From Octopus bimaculoides (taxonomy: Eukaryota): a stretch of 64,000 nucleotides of DNA. How positions within the stretch are numbered: position 1 is the first letter of the stretch; each line of letters opens with the position of its first letter. The position numbers and the translations under genes are program-made. Positions 56 through 61,280 of the stretch are shown piece by piece. The stretch lies in contig NC_068985.1 in the NCBI RefSeq assembly GCF_001194135.2, positions 25,528,796 to 25,592,795 on the forward strand, read 5' to 3'. Below the pieces are notes generated by a model, which saw only the letters and a list, made by a program, of their open reading frames with translations, was not told the DNA's origin and made no database searches.

Positions 56-232
56 CTTTAGGGCTCTATGAGTAGCTCTGGCAACAAACAGTTGTGTATT
101 TACAGCGAAAGAATCATCGATGGTCACATCATTAGGTGGTGGAGAGGTAAAGAAAGGTTTCAGAGTAGGTATCACATTAATGGTAACAATAGTTTTGGCA
201 GTTTTGGTTCCATCAGTAACTTCGACATCAAA
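56..232 (-). CDS. cadherin exon A18 (degenerate Ca motifs)
   Basis: [59 protein letters not shown]; cag/gtaag; 177 nt. Confidence 0.85.

Positions 233-61280: not shown

Follow-up and report, generated by a model that had tools for sequence, protein, structure and literature searches.

How many calcium ions would hold together the joints of a cadherin whose inter-repeat linkers lack most of the canonical calcium ligands, and how could the same departure come to be repeated along a whole array? The question is raised by a window of 64,000 nt of Octopus bimaculoides DNA (GCF_001194135.2, NC_068985.1:25,528,796-25,592,795; coordinates below are counted from the window start), whose minus strand carries part of a very large gene encoding tandem extracellular cadherin (EC) repeats. 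The prevailing view is that the mechanics of a cadherin are decided at each joint by the number of Ca2+ ions in its linker, and to our knowledge partial linkers have so far been known only as single exceptions in otherwise canonical proteins. The answer favoured here, at a probability of roughly two in three (0.66), is that the gene encodes a giant cadherin of the Cad99C/protocadherin-15 (PCDH15) family, in which an ancient EC8-9 linker and EC9 were amplified, the copies inherited linkers with an Arg-Asn (RN) motif, and selection has held calcium site 3, giving joints predicted to bind mostly one Ca2+.

The window DNA is AT-rich, rich in microsatellites and interrupted by 11 runs of N. It contains 37 exons of the gene, 19 of type A and 18 of type B, strictly alternating as A1, B1 and so on to B18, A19, and every one is open, phase 0-0 and bounded by polypyrimidine-AG acceptors and GTAAGT-like donors. 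The limits of this gene model, 61280 (first acceptor) and 56 (last donor), coincide with those of the first-pass annotation of the stretch, which had counted 18 A exons; its A16, A17 and A18 are A17, A18 and A19 here. Each A exon covers strands F and G of a repeat, the inter-repeat linker, and the A and B strands with the DxD motif of the next repeat, and each B exon encodes strands C-E, including the position where LDRE would fall. The conceptual product of 1,944 amino acids spans 18 repeats within the window and matches Pfam PF00028 (Cadherin) with E=3e-160 over 15 stretches; together with the predicted fold and its Foldseek neighbours, described below, this places the tandem EC repeats in the cadherin superfamily. 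Three independent protein models link the same exons in the same order: P0002 and P0004 terminate in window A1-B1-A2, P0001 starts inside B2 and extends beyond the window, and combined they yield at least 5,648 non-redundant residues of the RN repeat type, i.e. more than 50 EC repeats in the gene.

The linkers depart from the canonical form in both residues and length. The RN motif reads phi-x-R-N-x-(N/F/Y)-x-P-x-F, without D100 and D103, whereas the canonical motif is phi-x-D-x-N-D-N-x-P-x-F; and with the G-strand core residues at P-9/P-7 in the octopus gene and all its relatives versus P-10/P-8 in canonical cadherins, the RN linker is exactly one residue shorter. Numbering follows a 108-column EC hidden Markov model (HMM) built from CDH23, FAT4 and two Dachsous proteins, which coincides with that of E-cadherin. 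Global hhalign of 176 RN against 90 canonical linkers places a gap opposite D100, with R at 101, N at N102 and P at P106, and D100 is therefore deleted rather than substituted. The first-pass annotation had assumed this register, which the profile-profile alignment confirms. A G-strand-anchored register (R at D100, N at 101) was rejected, since both that alignment and the retained N-x-N-x-P-x-F spacing favour anchoring on the proline. Local hmmsearch and hmmalign to the canonical EC HMM truncated the alignment before most RN linkers, and P-anchored tabulation and global hhalign were used instead.

Ligands were tabulated per joint, with repeat n supplying the base ligands and repeat n+1 those of the top. 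Within the window D67 is absent from all joints, E11 is Glu in 8 of 19 repeats and position 69 is acidic in 5 of 18; the retained E11 and acidic 69 are absent from the earlier description. No B exon carries LDRE or LDYE, as that description had stated, and to the nearest forms that it listed, namely LSQE (B5), VSQE (B7), LYTE (B10) and LKTD (B13), LLFD (B6) can be added. Its account of the lost D100 and D103 holds as to distribution, with Asp at P-6 solely in A18, Asp at P-3 solely in A17 and Glu at P-3 in A3 and A4, but has to be amended in that D100 is deleted, not substituted. Site 3 is kept: N102 (Asn at P-4) occurs in 14 of 19 linkers, DxD in 15 of 19 A exons and the F-strand Asp (D195) in 16 of 19, a recount that agrees in pattern with the earlier 13/18, 14/18 and "most", and 12 of the 18 evaluable joints hold the full site-3 set of N102, DxD and D195. 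Arg or Lys stands at P-5 in 11 of 19 linkers. The site-3-only linker state, in which D67, D100 and D103 are lost and N102, DXD and the top XDX are kept, is thus found in the window and likewise in the family. The site-3 ligands are all lost in A7, A13 and A19, and the signature of a Ca2+-free linker appears there and at no other window joint. These three joints lie exactly six repeats apart, a spacing that does not recur as a rule elsewhere in the gene or among relatives when linker-state strings are compared. The co-linear oyster joint of A13 is also ligand-free, and this joint is therefore predicted from sequence to be a conserved Ca-free hinge.

The same selectivity extends across the family, and the pattern is far from a chance one. 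The RN set draws on 11 proteins, those of octopus and ten mollusc relatives, and comprises 132 mollusc-relative and 44 octopus-gene joints, 176 linkers in all. D134 is present in 97% of the mollusc relatives' joints, 97% in octopus and 100% in canonical controls, with corresponding values of 96, 97 and 99% for D136 and 95, 88 and 97% for D195. D67 falls to 9% in the relatives and 0% in octopus against 92% in the controls, E11 to 74 and 57% against 99%, and an acidic residue at 69 to 52 and 57% against about 96%. Ranked by relative entropy over 99 body columns of RN repeats, D134, D136 and D195 are 4th, 5th and 6th, E11 is 22nd and D67 91st; only core aromatics stand above the site-3 Asp residues, which equal their values in canonical cadherins and are the most conserved polar positions. 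Among 236 non-canonical joints, all four site-3 side-chain ligands occur in 144, the three Asp without the Asn (often with Asp in its place) in 45, and none in 11. The pattern suggests that purifying selection holds N102, D134, D136 and D195 at the level of canonical cadherins, sites 1 and 2 retaining only E11 (about 60-70%) and Asp/Glu-69 (about 50%). The first-pass annotation had argued against random decay and had named, as the outcome that would undo its reading, site-3 ligands no more conserved than other surface residues; across the mollusc relatives this outcome is not seen, site-3 ligands exceeding other surface residues in conservation and being retained or lost in concert.

To which family the array belongs is answered mainly by its relatives. 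Those that far outscore generic FAT4, Dachsous and CDH23 are all molluscan (oyster, mussel, scallop, abalone, whelk, apple snail and vent snail), and only these are rich in RN linkers, with 8-22 RN and 0-5 canonical linkers versus 0-3 RN and about 20 canonical in all others. The N-terminus of the oyster relative P0015 aligns with PDB 11iy_C in one 616-residue stretch, PCDH15 residues 93-695, at E=1e-66. The stretch corresponds to EC1-6 and takes in three idiosyncratic linkers, namely EC2-3 (DGDDL-type/DDLGP, with a Cys pair), EC3-4 and the site-3-only EC5-6. N-terminal EC1-EC8 of the relatives are co-linear with PCDH15, and the repeat-by-repeat layout agrees; NCBI names the oyster N-terminal fragments cadherin-99C-like. 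On the octopus side the transition region towards the N-terminus is visible, in P0004, the N-terminus itself lying outside the window.

The C-terminal end leads to the same family. A profile of seven mollusc C-termini, comprising the last EC, a membrane-adjacent domain, the transmembrane segment and the juxtamembrane motif FxEPPxFLREYETQSL, was used in an exhaustive profile search and matched Cad99C of Schistocerca (locust, 1e-26), ticks, Drosophila pseudoobscura (3e-15) and Palaemon (shrimp), as well as amphioxus protocadherin-15-like (4e-6), so that the relatives carry the C-terminal module of the family. It also reached giants of the limpet Patella (3,486 aa) and the brachiopod Lingula (3,993 aa), with 17 and 13 RN joints respectively and top ligands present in about 85-100%. 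P0007, P0021, P0187-P0191, P0195 and P0207 share an invariant WW-x-DDPW before the transmembrane segment and F-x-EPP-x-FLREYETQSL-x-MYVPPDE after it; this juxtamembrane/cytoplasmic motif is common to mollusc and brachiopod members and recognisable in Cad99C (…KEYETQ…). Matches by phmmer to the CDH23 MAD regions are correctly positioned and marginal (E>=0.04, not significant). In P0007 the 496 aa next to the membrane, scanned with Pfam, contain no EGF or laminin-G domain, only one Cadherin domain, and the Lingula and Patella C-termini have the same layout; the relatives are thus without this feature of FAT/FAT-like cadherins. No RN array occurs in insect Cad99C or amphioxus PCDH15-like, where the repeats number about 11. 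The octopus gene departs from the eleven ECs of the family, its RN repeats amounting to at least 5,648 aa and the window alone holding 18 repeats, and is therefore read as a size variant of it. The octopus gene would accordingly be a lophotrochozoan giant of the Cad99C/PCDH15 family. The database names "protocadherin Fat 4-like" and "cadherin-23-like" are misleading, reflecting length and not orthology.

The origin of the array can be approached from its repeats. Those in the window are 29% mutually identical (maximum 42%), neighbours being no closer than distant repeats, and runs of them find co-linear best matches in oyster and apple snail; the array therefore predates the cephalopod/bivalve/gastropod split. 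When an RN-repeat HMM and the canonical HMM are compared on the repeats of insect Cad99C and amphioxus PCDH15-like, EC9 alone prefers the RN model, by +17 to +34 bits, with the others at -5 to -42. Repeats one to eight of the oyster and scallop proteins are of the canonical, PCDH15-like kind, their EC8-9 linker is D-I-N-N-Y-P-P (human DMNDY), and the RN run starts at the ninth repeat. RN repeats and EC9 share the B-C loop DxDxxxPxN (versus DxDxGxN), and an aromatic residue stands at linker position 104 in 36% versus 10%. Tyr-104 and prolines following DXD are also seen in the crystal of human PCDH15 EC8-10, together with an enlarged distance between sites 2 and 3, a second DXD Asp serving site 3 alone, and a contorted inter-repeat arrangement (PMC5120219). 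The insect EC8-9 linker, V-E-D-R-N-D-x-P-P-x-F, already has Arg-101 and Asn-102 inside a fully liganded linker, and the Arg therefore need not be a compensatory gain.

From these data the following history may be proposed. An EC8-9 linker and EC9 unit, its site 3 already uncoupled from sites 1 and 2, would have been tandemly amplified long ago as a symmetric phase-0 two-exon cassette, and the copies would have lost D100 (by deletion), D103 and D67 while retaining site 3. The array-wide pattern is most economically explained as mainly inheritance plus selection, not as many parallel remodellings, so that the "systematic switch across the array" proposed in the first-pass annotation is better read as inheritance from one already atypical amplified unit. 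Two observations concern the internal organisation of such arrays. In the gastropod and limpet relatives P0006, P0007, P0009 and P0195 the distal half strictly alternates complete RN joints with joints having Arg-Asp or other residues at 101-102 (3p3p3p), therefore suggesting a two-repeat super-unit, and window repeats 1-2, 3-6 and 9-10 best match oyster repeats 1-4, which hints at higher-order block duplications.

At the level of the protein, most RN joints would bind one Ca2+ at site 3, by analogy with PCDH15 EC5-6, whose crystal forms all show a single Ca2+, bound at site 3, which is the highest-affinity site in tip-link cadherins (PMC7547225). The A7, A13 and A19 joints would bind no Ca2+, the shortened linker would set a non-canonical inter-repeat angle, and the conserved Arg may stand in for Ca1/Ca2 in charge or packing, or may be no more than a residue kept by descent. 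With such joints, uniform and atypical, the long ectodomain would form a chain and not a straight three-calcium rod. Sequence searches of the RN repeats against the PDB returned generic cadherins only, CELSR1 the best, and no solved RN-like linker. The A11-A13 pair was modelled with AlphaFold2 (AF2) from a 40-sequence RN-pair alignment, with no ions modelled, reaching a predicted local distance difference test score (pLDDT) of 91.7, a predicted template modelling score (pTM) of 0.78 and a linker pLDDT of 93-97. The model contains two copies of the seven-strand EC fold, and its Foldseek neighbours are cadherins without exception, with template modelling (TM) scores <=0.61 and root-mean-square deviations (RMSD) >=4.9 A over about 220 columns against solved EC pairs in the PDB. 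A canonical Lingula Dachsous pair treated identically, as a control, gave pLDDT 96.6, TM 0.75-0.92 and RMSD 1.6-3.5 A.

Several points weigh against the Cad99C/PCDH15 reading with site 3 held by selection. Family membership of the octopus gene is carried over from its mollusc and brachiopod relatives, and the C-terminal region matches the PDB through the EC repeat only, its membrane-adjacent domain giving no significant sequence match to the solved chains of MAD28 or of MAD12, the ferredoxin-like fold of the family. Since mollusc repeats were used to train the RN HMM, independence from training applies to its EC9 result in insects and amphioxus alone. Pairwise odds ratios of 9-79 for co-retention or co-loss of the four site-3 ligands come from repeats that share descent, so Fisher tests overstate their independence, the direction being unambiguous. 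The predicted geometry of the RN pair, defined but non-canonical, is that of one pair without ions and has no bearing on dynamics. E11 and acidic 69 occur together in 43% of RN linkers, and with the bridging D136 these two could hold a second, weak Ca2+.

This last point is the core of an alternative in which E11, Asp/Glu-69 and D136 would hold a second low-affinity ion, saturated at the about 10 mM Ca2+ of a sea-water-like body fluid. Retention of E11 in 57-74% and of an acidic 69 in about 55% of RN linkers, the rank of E11 among the columns, and PCDH15 EC2-3 and EC3-4, which bind two ions despite degraded motifs (PMC7547225), all speak for it; however, D67, D100 and D103 are all missing, the backbone that wraps site 2 is one residue shorter, a cationic Arg is conserved at 101, and E11 and acid-69 are uncorrelated, which together make two-ion joints unlikely. 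The first-pass annotation had pictured one-Ca2+ linkers and a semi-flexible or extensible ectodomain; with each joint a flexible hinge and the whole a floppy or extensible tether, this deserves to be kept as a serious minority view: PCDH15 EC5-6 follows the same motif logic, its orientation varies among crystals, and in simulations it adds soft elasticity (PMC7547225), and the non-canonical CELSR1 CADH5-6 linker behaves as a hinge (PMC12038025). Against such softness, AF2 is confident of the placement at the linker scores given above, suggesting defined packing although not measuring dynamics, the RN linker is shorter and has conserved R, N and aromatics that EC5-6 is without, and its relation is to EC8-9, contorted yet ordered (PMC5120219). 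A bolder proposal treats the RN joint as a distinct and hitherto undescribed linker class, one residue shorter, with a single site-3 Ca2+, an Arg filling the Ca1/Ca2 space and its charge, and a fixed non-linear angle. About 50 such joints in series would give a regularly curved or helical filament of >200 nm, punctuated by a few conserved Ca-free hinges, a lophotrochozoan re-engineering of PCDH15; this is put forward tentatively, as an idea that we would sooner expect to fail than to hold.

Joints that need no calcium at all are a poorer prospect still. Here the Arg would neutralise D134, D136 and D195 by salt bridges and the site-3 residues would be structural, in keeping with the tight coupling of Arg/Lys at P-5 to Asn at P-4 (odds ratio 14.6), with the tracking of the top triad by Arg when N102 is present (5.3, p=0.03), and with the confident joint that AF2 builds without an ion. 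The associations of Arg with E11, acid-69 and the top triad are weak and all in the same direction. Yet insect Cad99C EC8-9 has the same Arg in a full D-R-N-D with all ligands, Arg-101 being thus compatible with bound Ca2+; the Arg-less linkers A4, A10, A16 and A18 still have N102; three carboxylates and an Asn form the canonical geometry of site 3, the site of highest affinity in tip-link cadherins; and AF2 commonly produces Ca2+ sites with no ion present, the control being an example. Neutral decay, of an array that was redundant or had become a pseudogene, would account for the ligands lost in A7, A13, A19 and partly A10 and for the many exons that public gene models skip. It was rejected and has next to no probability, given that 37 of 37 exons are open with canonical splice sites, that site-3 residues are as conserved across molluscs and the brachiopod as in canonical cadherins with their losses concerted, and that octopus and oyster have one of the ligand-free joints in common. 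A Cad99C/PCDH15 giant with inherited RN linkers and predominantly site-3-only joints is thus the reading retained.

The individual exons, all on the minus strand, rest on splice sites and translation, and on motif tabulation where motifs are named. A1 (61089..61280) encodes F/G strands, a linker and DAD, its site-3 set being complete with N102, DxD and the D195 in A2, and is also among the last exons of P0002 and P0004; B1 (59604..59732, strands C-E) has LSLS at the LDRE position. A2 (58471..58656) contains a linker, LET and DND with a complete site-3 set, followed by B2 (57219..57359), strands C-E without DRE, in which P0001 starts. The set is likewise complete in A3 (55695..55883; linker IRNENSPYF with Glu at 103, DND), A4 (52007..52195; linker SSNEKAPIF with N102 and without Arg/Lys, Glu at 103, XEX as AET, DAD), A5 (48398..48586) and A6 (46066..46251), each with its linker. 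Between and after them lie B3 (54326..54457), B4 (49102..49239), which is absent from the public model P0001, B5 (46788..46919), whose LSQE retains Glu-69 and has lost D67, and B6 (45175..45306) with LLFD. A7 (42647..42826), with linker VLHNLCPTF and AIRNP in place of DxD, has lost all site-3 ligands and is a putative Ca-free joint; B7 (39590..39721) carries VSQE. In A8 (37684..37866) Asn replaces the F-strand Asp, with linker ERNQFGPQW, XEX as YED, and DRD, and in A9 (34067..34255) the F-strand residue is Glu, with linker IRNLFVPQF and DAD, the site-3 set of A9's own linker being complete; B8 (34420..34545) lies between them and B9 (31719..31850) follows.

A10 (29788..29961) has linker AQNVPRPRF and XEX as LET and has lost DxD (LIVQT), and B10 (28441..28569) carries LYTE. 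A11 (26248..26427; linker VRNNFPPVF, XEX as EEN, DKD) supplies the first repeat of the AF2 model, and A12 (23039..23224; KRNFFPPVF, DRD) the modelled linker, to which the linker pLDDT of 93-97 refers; B11 (24889..25035) and B12 (21670..21798) alternate with them. A13 (20083..20259) is without DxD and has lost all site-3 ligands, as has the co-linear oyster linker, and B13 (19199..19324) carries LKTD. A14 (16672..16845) has Leu in the F strand, linker KRNLNTPIF, XEX as NES, and DLD, with the site-3 set of its own linker complete, and is followed by B14 (15483..15617). A15 (13945..14133) has Ser at the N102 position, XEX as DEN, and DRD; beyond B15 (13295..13420), A16 (12243..12425; linker TQNSSGPKF, DRD) again has a complete site-3 set, followed by B16 (11554..11667). 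A17 (8590..8772) has linker VHQDNAPIF, with Gln at 102 and Asp at 103, and DAD; A18 (3184..3363) has Asp at P-6 and DLD; and A19 (56..232) has linker VIPTLKPFF, without N102 and without DxD, the gene running on past the window. B17 (7139..7264) and B18 (441..560) separate these last three.

The integrity of this gene model across assembly gaps was considered. All 11 N runs are intronic, leaving the exons untouched, and the A/B alternation is intact over every gap-bearing intron. The gaps at 8245, 12990, 25409, 26644, 28138, 33197, 40801, 56693, 58220 and 61784 have (TA)n on one or both sides in nearly all cases, and are therefore most likely unresolved intronic microsatellites. A whole exon pair could in principle be hidden in a gap-bearing intron; oyster co-linearity over window repeats 11-17 argues against it for that stretch. 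Public gene models break the one gene into at least two pieces, and P0001 is without 12 of the 37 window exons (B4, B5, B8, B10, B15, B16, A17, B17, A18, B18, A19 and part of B2). Skipping of a lone B exon would remove strands C-E of a repeat, and the omissions are therefore probably annotation errors, not isoforms. Within two introns, open reading frame fragments at 5857-6528 (+) and 57816-58067 (-) contain a C-terminal motif of the long interspersed nuclear element (LINE) reverse-transcriptase type (…RLxWYGHVxR…GRGRPRKTW), and a short interspersed repeat common to several introns recurs as pseudo-translations, e.g. at 3339-3626, 27681-27860 and 41077-41274.

A search of open-access papers found no description of this giant family or of RN linkers. 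The array would represent one partial-linker type multiplied about 50-fold and kept under selection in molluscs and a brachiopod, offering a uniform, repeat-rich natural material for measuring how site-3-only joints affect stiffness, shape and Ca2+ dependence. Recognising the mollusc and Lingula proteins named "protocadherin Fat 4-like" or "cadherin-23-like" as giant Cad99C/PCDH15 members redirects the search for their function to microvillar, ciliary and hair-bundle links; traits of that family include heterophilic tip-to-tip binding to cadherin-23 and a place on microvilli or stereocilia. The EC5-6 linker reads PNTKPPRF/PNTRSPVF in insect Cad99C and NNQSRPTF in amphioxus PCDH15-like (P0214, P0240, P0326), with N at P-4 and the top ligands intact; since vertebrates, insects and amphioxus all have it, the site-3-only EC5-6 linker must go back to the bilaterian ancestor. 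To that ancestor the atypical features of PCDH15, a protein of hearing and deafness, would be dated, those of EC5-6 as well as those of EC8-9/EC9. The locus is of interest for the structural biology of cadherins and for how tip-link proteins evolved.

Among known systems, FAT4, Dachsous and cadherin-23 resemble the octopus protein in their very long EC arrays, with 23-26% identity over the array, but they have 0-3 RN against about 20 canonical linkers and different N- and C-terminal modules, the relatives here being without EGF and laminin-G. Drosophila Cad99C and vertebrate PCDH15 are closer, with EC1-8 co-linear including the idiosyncratic linkers and with a homologous last EC, pre-membrane domain, transmembrane segment and juxtamembrane motif, as seen in the relatives; they differ in having 11 ECs and 1,500-1,950 aa, against more than 50 ECs and more than 5,600 aa here. 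PCDH15/Cad99C EC8-9 and EC9 (PDB 4XHZ; PMC5120219) come nearest to the RN unit itself, in the match of EC9 to the RN profile, the DxDxxPPxN B-C loop, the aromatic residue at 104 and the insect Arg-Asn at 101-102, whereas that linker keeps D100, D103 and DYE, binds three Ca2+, has canonical length and occurs once and not about 50 times. PCDH15 EC5-6 (PDB 5W1D, 6BXU), of the same family and present at the orthologous position in the mollusc relatives, shows the same degradation of the acidic ligands of XEX, DRE and DXNDN with N at P-4, DXD and XDX kept; unlike the RN joints, it is a single joint in an 11-repeat protein, its linker PPNNQSPPRF has no Arg-Asn, the RN linker is one residue shorter than canonical, and RN repeats are not especially similar to EC5 or EC6. 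The Ca2+-free linkers of DN-cadherin EC2-3, Fat/Dachsous, CELSR1 CADH5-6 and PCDH15 EC9-10 are likewise non-canonical joints that reshape long ectodomains, and A7, A13 and A19 fit among them; those of the giant cadherins are isolated joints that have lost their top motifs too, whereas most joints of the octopus array retain a complete site 3.

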